A stretch of DNA of 64,000 nucleotides from Macrostomum lignano (Eukaryota). Made by a program: the position numbers and the translations under genes. The notes beneath the pieces were generated by a model that did not search any database, was not told the DNA's origin, and saw only the letters and a list, made by a program, of their open reading frames with translations. This document shows positions 9,901 to 12,900 of this stretch, in pieces (position 1 is the stretch's first letter; each line of letters begins with the position of its first letter). The DNA is taken from assembly GCA_002269645.1 (NCBI GenBank), contig NIVC01001014.1, positions 1 to 64,000 on the forward strand. The letters run 5' to 3'.

Positions 9901-12900
9901 GCAATATTTTTTGTTTAAAAAAGCGAAGGCAACAGCTTTGCGTGATAAAACTCGGTCTCTAAACTTTAAAAAGTTTGTGGCTTTGTACGTAGACTTAAAC
10001 ATGTGCATCTATAAGCGTAATTCAGTTTGCGTAATCTTAAATATTGTGTAACATCGTATATAACGTTTAAACTCTAAACTTTAAACTTTAATATCTCATC
10101 TCGCTGCAAATTAGACCACTGAAACACCAAAGGGTATGAAGACACACCATCAAAACACCGAAGGGAATAAGGACACACCGTCGAAACACCAAAGGGTATG
10201 AGGACACACCATCAAAACACTGAAGGGAATGAGGACACACCATCGAAACACCAAAGGGTATGAGGACACACCATCAAAACACCGAAGGGAATGAGGACAC
10301 ACCGTCGAAACACCGAAGGGAATGAGGACACACCACTGAAATGGCAATACTACATTAGCCCGCAGGAAATTAGCCCGCGGGAAGTTTGCCAGCAGACGTT
10401 TCCCGCAGACGTTTGCCCGCGGGCAAGCTTCCCGCGGGCTAATTTCCTGCAGGCTAATGTCGTACTGCCGTTTCGGGTCTATGACATTAGCCATCGAAAC
10501 ACTGAAGGGTACAAGCGTATGAGGACACACCATAATCGGGTTGAGATTATGACACCATTGAATTCAGGTAACATTTAAACAATTGTTACTAACACCAACT
10601 CCGTGACTCGCAATCCCAGGCAACCACAAACGAGTTTGGCATCTTCGTTAATTCAGCCGGTGTTCCAATTTTGTCGTCGCCAAATAGCGACGGAAAATTC
10701 TTAGACGCCAACGGCAAAGCTTTGGCTTGTCGACGAGCGGTGGCATCGGTTGACCCCGGAACTGGCGAGCAGCGCCTTATTGACAAACTAGACGGCTTGC
10801 CCATTCGCGGTCTTCGACTTGGACCAAACGGAGTCCTACTAGACGAGTCCGGTTTGCCAGTTCGCGGTGAGAACGGCGAATTCTTCGGCGCTAATCATCG
10901 GCCGGTCTACGGTCGTCGAGGCGCCGACGGTGAACTGTTGGACGAAGAGGGACAGGCTCTGCAGCAGCTGGGCTTGAACAGCTTTGGCGTGTTGGCCGAT
11001 TCGACCACCGGACTGCCGATTACCCGCCAGTCGGATGGTGCTCTACTCGACGCTCACGGCCAGCCAATCGATTGTCGACGTTGCGAGCTCAGCGCCAACG
11101 ATTTGCTAGTCGATCCAGTCGACGGCTCGCCAATCGGCGTCACCAGTGTCAACGTTTTCGGTGTGCTGGTAGACTCGCAGGGCCGTCCGTTGCGCGGACC
11201 TCAGGGCGAGTTCTACGGAGCGAATCGGGCGCCGGTGTACGGCGGACTGCGCGGCCCTGACGGTCAGCTGATCGACCCGGCGAACGGCGGTCAGAGACGG
11301 ACTCGAGTTAACGAGTTCGGTGCACTAGTGGACGCATCCACTGGCGAGTTGCTACTGGGTCCAGACGGTCAGCTGTTGAATTCTCGGGCACAGCCAATGT
11401 CAAGCCGGCGGGTTCGGCTGGTTGAAGCGACGGAAGAGGGCGGCCAACAGCAGCTGGTGGACGCAGAAACTGGGGAGCCGCTGAGTCCGGAAACGGACTG
11501 GCGTGTCAACGAGCACGGTGTCCTTGTGGACGCAGAGTCCGGCTTGGCTCTGCGTGGTCCTTCAGGCGAGTTTTTCGGTCCACAGGACGGTCTACCACTG
11601 GCCGGAGGTCCCACACGAGACGCCGAGGGTCGTCTGGTATGCGACGGCGTAGAAGATGGATCAGACTTAAGTGGCAAGCCGTTGAAAACGAAAGTCAACG
11701 ACTGGGGCGTTCTAGTAGAGGTTGTCGGCGAAAGTGAAAACGCTGAGGAGCGACCAATTTTGTCGTCGGATGGTAAGCTTTTGGACGCGTCCGGCCGGGT
11801 CATCGACTGCCGAATCGTGCCAACAACAGCCGCAGCTCGGTCTCGTTTCGTCGACGACGTCGCTAAGAACAATGGACTGGAGCTGAGTGAGCACGGAGTG
11901 GTCATCGACACGGCCAGTGGTCTACCGGTTCGAAACCAAGCTGCTGGCGAGTTTCTCGGCACCGATGGTCGACCCGTCTACGGACCAAGAGACGCCGATG
12001 GCAAGCTTAAGATTGAAACGAAGCTGAATGATTACGGAGTTTTGGTCGACGCGACAACCGGGGAAGCAATCCGAGGACCGCGAGGACAGCTGTTAGACGC
12101 AAACGGCCAGGCGATAACATGCGAGGTCGTTGAGCCCGGCTCGGACGGAGCCCTGCCGGCGCCGCCGCCGGGTCAAGAGTACCGACTCAACGCGCACGGC
12201 GTACTCATTAACTCCGCTTCCGGCCTGCCGGTGCGCGATTCCAACGGTCGATTCTACGGACTGAACCGGCGGCCAGTGTACGGGGAGAGACTGGCAAGCG
12301 GCAAGCTGGCTGGTGCGGTGCAGGTTGGTCCAGACGGTCATCTGGTGGACGCTGAGGTAACCCGGTTAAAGGACCCGATGGAGAGCTGCTCGACGCCAAT
12401 GGACAGCCGATTGATGAGGCAGCTGTTGCAGCTGCTGCTGCTGCTGCTGCTGTGGCTGATGCTGCTGCCACTACCGATACCGAAGCTGGAACGGGAGCCG
12501 AGACTGACGCTGCAGCCGCTGCTGGTGGGGCAACGGCTACAGCTGAAACGGTAACAGATGCCGTTGAGTCGGTGGAAGCCGCGGCAGAGACCGGAGACGG
12601 TGTCGCCAGTGGCGAGGAACTGGAAGCGGCGACTATTGCCACGGAGACGACGGAGACCGGGGCGCAGGCAGACTTCGAGGACGAGCCGCAGCCGGGCGAT
12701 CCAGGCTTCTTTGGCCGCATCAAGAAAGGCTTCCAAGAGTTCCAAGAGAAGGTCGAAGAGTTCGCCGAAGAGACCAATGAGAAGATGAAGGAGTTCAACG
12801 AAGATACAAAGCGCAAGATGGAGGCGTTCAACGATGACACGCGCAAGAAGTTTGAAGAATTCGGCGAAGGCACAAAGAAGACGTTCGGAAATTTTGGCGA

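Follow-up and report, generated by a model that had tools for sequence, protein, structure and literature searches.

A block of bipartite protein repeats in a RIM-binding protein gene of Macrostomum lignano and its possible use as an alternative C-terminus

What is the long open frame that lies between the third fibronectin type III (FN3) exon and the next exon of a RIM-binding protein (RIMBP) gene of Macrostomum lignano? The gene is on the forward (+) strand of contig NIVC01001014.1 (assembly GCA_002269645.1), the first 64,000 nucleotides of which are referred to here as the window; all positions are those of the window. Translation gives a stop-free frame of 579 codons on the + strand, 10620-12356, and the original prediction, made by a model from the letters of the DNA, described it as a skippable cassette exon with five repeats of an unrecognised kind. 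The frame is a real and uncatalogued repeat module in a RIMBP gene. As for its structure, we favour, at a probability of roughly 0.55, the reading that 10620-12997 is one coding block spliced onto the third FN3 exon, which would provide an alternative RIMBP C-terminus and which is split in the assembly by a single-base break.

The host gene exhibits the full RIMBP layout on one strand (SH3, three FN3, SH3, SH3). Pfam Ig_RIMBP2 matched within 7114-7686 and 9196-9570 and SH3_2 within 13742-14392, and a query composed of the flanking exons retrieved proteins named RIMS-binding protein 2 from fish, mammals, insects, a crinoid and a spider. Using RIMBP homologues as tblastn queries, SH3-I was placed at 6205-6621, FN3-1 to FN3-3 at 7207-9423 on the + strand, SH3-II at 14135-14386 and SH3-III at 14811-15020, and the domain order was kept throughout 6205-15020. 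The domains, the names of the homologues and the tblastn order thus confirmed that the host is a RIM-binding protein gene. The nearest RIMBP local alignments reached approximately 35% identity over approximately 40% of the query, or 60-66% over SH3-II alone, and no close relative of the host RIMBP was found in the protein collection searched. The following exons frame the locus:

9205-9540, + strand: third FN3/Ig exon of the RIMBP gene (Ig_RIMBP2 E 6e-15, tblastn), ending in phase 0, donor GTGAGT at 9541
13428-13593, + strand: exon coding for a linker rich in Ser and Arg (start in phase 0, end in phase 1, donor GTGAGT), joined to the exon at 13767
13767-14391, + strand: SH3-II exon (Pfam SH3_2 E 2e-9; tblastn 57-64% identity)
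14654-15024, + strand: last exon, SH3-III, its TAA at 15021-15023 overlapped by AATAAA at 15019-15024

The overlap of the TAA stop with a canonical AATAAA shows that, here at least, the poly(A) signal of the organism is the standard one. The tblastn domain order and the gene end place the repeat block in the linker between FN3-3 and SH3-II. This linker is variable in length in RIMBP2, TSPOAP1/RIMBP1 and Drosophila RIM-BP, and in isoform F of the latter it extends roughly from residue 1042, the end of FN-III(3), to residue 1318, the start of SH3-II (PMC7337501). The location of the block is therefore shared with these proteins, but none of the 31 RIMBP homologues compared has the repeat, and the block of the host has its own stop and an amphipathic tail.

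The 5' side of the block carries the following splice region:

10587-10619, + strand: acceptor region of the block (branch-like TACTAAC at 10587-10593, then a sequence ending in caatcccAG, with AG at 10618-10619)

The style of this acceptor, cccAG/G, is that of the other acceptors of the host gene. The upstream exon ends at 9540 (GAC/GTGAGT) in phase 0, the downstream exon follows ttctAG and opens at 13428, likewise in phase 0, and a GT at 12357 directly follows the 579-codon frame. An AG acceptor, a GT donor and phases that fit both the neighbours and skipping were all found, and the splice models with and without 10620-12356 are both open to the RIMBP stop. A stop-free phase-0 exon between 9540 and 13428, as the original prediction had it, is consequently borne out by the translation, by the AG and GT and by the phases. 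The block has no methionine ahead of about residue 260 and a stop codon is present at 10590-10592, just 5' of it, which argues that the block is spliced from an upstream exon. The acceptor, phase 0 and the shared cccAG/G style link it to the exon at 9205-9540. The upstream intron (9541-10619) was found to contain no phase-0 exon that begins with ATG and has a donor fit for use, and codon log-odds, trained on 1,431 codons from the RIMBP, DnaJ and aminoacyl-tRNA synthetase exons of the window, were of non-coding type there in every frame. The same intron holds an array of 31/62-nt repeats at 10121-10335.

The protein encoded by the 579 codons consists of five repeat units, each with an A half and a B half:

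10620-10967, + strand: repeat unit 1, A and B half, frame 0 (alignment; hidden Markov model (HMM) domain of 147.9 bits)
10968-11300, + strand: repeat unit 2 (alignment, BLASTP, HMM)
11301-11687, + strand: repeat unit 3, the longest, with insertions (alignment, BLASTP, HMM)
11688-12017, + strand: repeat unit 4 (alignment, BLASTP, HMM)
12018-12314, + strand: repeat unit 5, A and B halves (alignment, BLASTP, HMM)

The units are 110-129 amino acids (aa) long, share 17 invariant alignment columns and show 39-46% identity to unit 1. Pairwise BLASTP among them gave 33-45% identity with E values between 8e-7 and 5.5e-21 (database size set to 1e6), whereas blastn among the five units returned only fragments of 15-78 bases, and Tandem Repeats Finder (TRF) detected no tandem array inside the exon at 10620-12356. 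The units have been kept as protein and not as DNA, which points to long purifying selection. The claim of an old protein repetition as opposed to a minisatellite is upheld by the contrast between BLASTP and blastn together with the TRF result. The computed consensus of the A half, TxxNxFGVLVDxxTGxPIxxPDGxLLDAxGQxIxCRRV...LVDxxxGxP, and that of the B half, RLNxHGVLxDxxSGLPVRGxxGEFxGxNxRPVYGxRxADGxL, agree with the motifs initially quoted for five bipartite units. The A and B halves are homologous to each other according to profile-profile comparison by hhalign (probability 97.8%, E 9e-13), so the exon can be described as ten alternating sub-repeats of approximately 55 aa. They are built of short turns of the form h-h-D-x-x-(S/T)-G-x-P-h, 17 of which were counted when a sixth half-unit, described below, was included. 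The protein of the block is rich in Gly, Leu, Val, Ala and Asp and has a net charge of -28.

Searches for relatives of the repeat were largely negative. The 579-aa query had no match in a word-indexed search of 5.8 billion proteins, Pfam and NCBIfam gave only sub-threshold chance matches on the block (dioxygenase beta-sandwich, RcnB, VasI), the sequence profile search of the PDB with the block gave nothing below E 0.5, and Rfam gave no match on the whole window. Metagenome scans for relatives and for the exact 26-mer adjoining the frame break found nothing. The repeat was absent from 31 RIMBP homologues, on all of which the unit profile scored at most 5 bits. That the repeats are uncatalogued and absent from other RIMBPs, as originally supposed, was supported by the Pfam, NCBIfam and PDB searches and by these homologues.

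A HMMER search with the unit profile against 1.84 billion representative proteins found 45 matches at E <=1e-3, the best being 8.7e-19 and none below 1e-30. Each of them is a long repeat protein with many weak stretches of 5-17 bits. The summed scores of the unit profile over all 45 matches were 36-84 bits, and reversed or column-shuffled profiles scored 0-9 bits on the same proteins, which shows that the similarity in the motif D-G-x-h-h-D-x-x-G-x-P-h is real and not one of composition. Similarity by composition only to the bacterial matches was ruled out by these controls. The B-half signature GEFxG...RPVYG in register was absent from the profile matches, and the full 579-aa sequence reached no more than 43 bits against the 45 proteins, with heavy bias correction. 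Judged from sequence comparison, the bipartite unit is uncatalogued and unique within the collections searched; only the elementary hairpin is widespread, and homology and convergence are not separable at 5-17 bits per stretch.

The central repeats of bacterial DotG/IcmE/VirB10 proteins and some autotransporter passengers share the short motif D-G-x-h-h-D-x-x-G-x-P-h with the block. The DotG/IcmE/VirB10-type repeats differ in having short uniform periods, no A/B alternation and no GEFxG...RPVYG, and the proteins carry a transmembrane segment and a TrbI/VirB10 domain, for which there was no Pfam or NCBIfam match on the block. Among eukaryotes, the uncharacterised proteins Onthophagus taurus LOC111427558 and Lingula anatina LOC106176974 contain long arrays of hairpin repeats of approximately 45-48 aa. 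The Gly/Asp spacing in these giant proteins resembles that of the B half, e.g. PGVQLDESGHPLLDAEGHMLTASGHVLP, but each repeat scored only 4-13 bits and RIMBP domains are missing. The Lingula protein has a domain context of LIM, KY-like Ig and a weak RHS match; Pfam RHS_repeat, the family of the RHS/YD repeats, did not match the block at E up to 1. Also among the eukaryotic matches examined is an environmental protein that combines a coiled coil with 33-aa repeats and a C2 domain. The Onthophagus, Lingula and environmental proteins may represent an unrecognised repeat class of animals and protists.

The fold of the repeat was approached by structure prediction. An AlphaFold2 model of unit 1, based on the five-unit alignment (pLDDT, the predicted local distance difference test, 73.7; pTM, the predicted template modelling score, 0.65), contains short strands only. 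Prediction from the single sequence of all 579 aa yielded a model too poor for use (pLDDT 41), again with nearly all short strands. Foldseek with the one-unit model found no significant match in the PDB. The consistently top-ranking proteins, which like the model form a chain of short hairpins, were choline-binding and glucan-binding hairpin solenoids, and these were not significant either (best E 9e-3, TM score approximately 0.2, root-mean-square deviation >13 Å); the block had no Pfam match to choline- or glucan-binding repeats at E up to 1 and lacks their aromatic signature. The models support the suggestion that the repeats are rich in beta hairpins. The 'beta-hairpin-rich solenoid' that had been proposed thus stands in its first part, since both predictions are beta-rich, but not in its second, a solenoid not being established by a one-unit model without a Foldseek match.

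The 3' end of the block is where the cassette model meets difficulties. The +2 frame is open from 12356 for 213 codons, up to a TGA at 12995-12997, and in a six-frame scan of the window the +2 segment after 12356 was the sole match of the unit profile outside the exon (E 2e-5). The last 14 codons of the exon, an unspecified residue X and the +2 frame together make a sixth A half which scored 36.8 bits; the sequence obtained by read-through in frame 0 or across the cassette junction scored 6-7 bits. The X at the break corresponds to a glycine position that is invariant in all five units, and one extra G (GAGGGT instead of GAGGT) would make the frame continuous from 10620 to the TGA, over 792 codons. 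The region beyond unit 5 contains the following features:

12315-12418, + strand: sixth A-type half-unit across the frame break (12315-12356 in frame 0, 12359-12418 in the +2 frame)
12357-12362, + strand: putative cassette donor GTAACC, in phase with frame 0, at the one-base frame break, without G at +5
12419-12706, + strand: acidic, low-complexity spacer rich in Ala, Thr and Glu (+2 frame); 12422-12468 is a run of (GCT)n
12551-12556, + strand: second donor-like site GTAACA, in phase with the +2 frame
12707-12937, + strand: seven amphipathic repeats of 11 residues each, T-x-x-K-h-x-x-F-x-x-x (+2 frame; TRF period of 33 nt)
12938-12997, + strand: short acidic C-terminus and TGA stop (TGA at 12995-12997)

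Coding character does not end at the donor at 12357, as the half-unit, the GC content and the codon usage of 12551-12994 run on beyond it. The GC content stays at approximately 0.6 across 12357; its drop, from about 0.58 to about 0.38, comes only after approximately 13000, at the TGA. The codon log-odds of 12551-12994 were +0.26 in the +2 frame and about -0.5 in the other two; they were ambiguous for the Ala-rich segment 12356-12550 and negative in all frames of both neighbouring introns. The four verified donors of the window (three GTGAG and one GTTAG) all have G at +5, and the GTAACA at 12551 is the only other GTAA or GT[AG]AG site in 12300-13010. Removal of a 62-nt mini-intron, 12357-12418, would restore the frame, but this candidate was rejected as unlikely: its GC content is 56%, compared with 31-43% in real introns, no pyrimidine tract is present, and what it contains is the repeat motif. 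Of the cassette exon ending at 12356, the splice signals and the phases stand, but its end is doubtful, because the coding-like block extends 640 bases further in another frame and has a stop there, the donor falls within a repeat half-unit, and G is missing at its +5 position.

The ancestral structure, and probably also the true one, is a single block, 10620-12997, with its own stop. According to the reading we favour, the 579 codons would be the first three quarters of one 2.4-kb block that codes for five bipartite units, a sixth A half, an acidic spacer, seven 11-mers and a stop, and that presumably joins RIMBP transcripts. The frame break would then be an assembly error or a recent allele and not a designed splice site. 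Several observations weigh against this. The assembled sequence does carry the break at 12356/12357. Elsewhere in the window, approximately 4.3 kb of conserved coding sequence, the 1,431 training codons, is free of frameshifts, and a (GATA)243 array without a single imperfection also speaks for an accurate assembly; an artefact should therefore not be assumed by default. The GT at 12357 is compatible in phase with the exon at 13428, and the cassette model is open. Protein and metagenome searches provided neither a homologue nor an orthologous locus nor a transcript of the block. Finally, neither AATAAA nor ATTAAA occurs in 12998-13427, between the TGA and the exon at 13428, where only a GATAAA at 13222 was found, unlike the end of the host gene itself, which has AATAAA. 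The assembled sequence fits three states, i.e. an assembly error, a recent truncating deletion and a deletion that brought a latent weak donor into phase and so produced a cassette, and it does not permit a firm choice among them. The intact coding-like tail implies that any real deletion is recent.

The third of these states is the strongest rival of the single-block reading, although we consider it unlikely. In this case 10620-12356 would be a true cassette that uses the GTAACC donor, and the +2 frame would be a recent relic of a longer exon after a one-base deletion. The AG and GT, the 0/0 phase and the two open splice models are all in its favour, as is the lack of any other frameshift in the 4.3 kb of conserved coding sequence. 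The donor, however, cuts the sixth half-unit in mid-motif and does not have the +5 G of the four verified donors, and exon-like codon usage in 12551-12994, exon-like GC content and a 213-codon frame that reaches its stop at the GC boundary are left behind it. The cassette stands only if the one-base break is real and the weak GTAACC donor is used.

It is improbable that the break is real and unspliced, so that the reference haplotype carries a truncating loss-of-function allele or the exon is in early decay. The presence of the break in the assembly, the 65 junk codons before a stop on read-through in frame 0 and the lineage-specific nature of the exon, for which no relatives were detected, would agree with such a state. 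On the other hand, both parts are otherwise intact over 2.4 kb with coding-type codon usage, except for the ambiguous Ala-rich 12356-12550, and the five units show long-term conservation at the protein level.

An independent gene on the same strand, nested in the RIMBP intron and not joined to the RIMBP exons, is very improbable. It would account for the separate stop codon of the block and for a composition and an architecture unrelated to RIMBP domains, but the absence of an early methionine and the stop at 10590-10592 demand an upstream exon, 9541-10619 offers no ATG-initiated phase-0 exon with a donor and is non-coding in all frames, and the phase of the block agrees with that of the RIMBP exon. 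A bacterial derivation, by horizontal transfer or contamination, from something akin to DotG/IcmE-type repeat regions can practically be dismissed: the best profile matches are indeed bacterial DotG/IcmE/VirB10 and autotransporter proteins, but they amount to 5-17 bits per stretch on a short motif with neither a full unit nor the B-half signature in register, the full 579 aa gained at most 43 bits against the 45 matches under heavy bias correction, and the block has a spliceosomal acceptor and host-like codon usage and GC content and lies in phase inside an animal gene.

If 10620-12997 is a single block, as we prefer to think, a repeat arm would take the place of SH3-II and SH3-III in an isoform that retains SH3-I and the three FN3 domains. 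The SH3-II/III pair of RIMBPs binds RIM and calcium channels. The repeats may form an elongated acidic array of hairpins that serves as a spacer or a binding surface, the acidic segment rich in Ala, Thr and Glu may be a flexible linker and the 11-mer tail may bind membranes. In the 11-mers, hydrophobic residues occupy positions 5 and 8 and Lys occupies position 4. Amphipathic helices made of 11-residue repeats are known from proteins of the apolipoprotein A/E, perilipin, synuclein and LEA-3 types. The likeness of the tail to these consists in tandem 11-mers with a 33-nt period in the DNA; the difference is that the Pfam Apolipoprotein match on the tail is weak and far below the cut-off (18.6 bits vs 90) and that a protein search with the 213-aa tail gave no match. 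A more specific proposal, which is tentative and which we would regard as doubtful in its entirety, is that the arm of approximately 790 aa consists of eleven hairpin sub-repeats of approximately 55 aa from a new family, an acidic spacer and a vesicle-binding 11-mer helix of the synuclein or perilipin type, and that by replacing SH3-II/III it acts as a vesicle tether on an active-zone scaffold.

Other features of the window do not concern the block. The window (1-64000) has an exceptional density of minisatellites, with approximately 27 distinct arrays of TRF score >=400, many of them in introns. They include the perfect (GATA)243, a 20-mer repeated 116 times and an 18-mer repeated 70 times; examples of positions are 4726-5699, 21973-24281, 33100-34443 and 56585-57842. 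Three further coding features were noted:

29860-30945 and 32459-33118, - strand: class II aminoacyl-tRNA synthetase gene (Asp/Lys/Asn type), with the Pfam tRNA-synt_2 core (E 1e-59) and an OB-fold anticodon-binding exon, and an array of a 13-mer repeated 80 times between them
37409-38044, - strand: 212-codon, possibly coding open frame with a Gln-rich stretch and no Pfam match, between two minisatellite blocks
41218-43297, - strand: DNAJA-type chaperone gene (J domain, CXXCXGXG zinc finger, DnaJ_C) without a frameshift, with an intron of approximately 90 nt (GTTAGT...TTGCAG) near 41860-41950 and a 29-mer minisatellite in the first intron

RIM-binding proteins have a core role in organising the sites of neurotransmitter release, and lineage-specific insertions in the linkers of scaffold proteins are common. 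For annotation, the locus is a caution that a neat in-phase exon bounded by AG and GT can arise from a one-base break in a longer exon. For the family, the block, if our reading is true, would add an uncatalogued repeat family, and its tail suggests a testable function. Vesicle recruitment in Drosophila depends on the N-terminal region of RIM-BP, and transport to the active zone depends on its SH3 domains (PMC7337501). An isoform with the N-terminal half and a repeat arm in place of the SH3 pair would, if it exists, be a natural experiment separating these functions.

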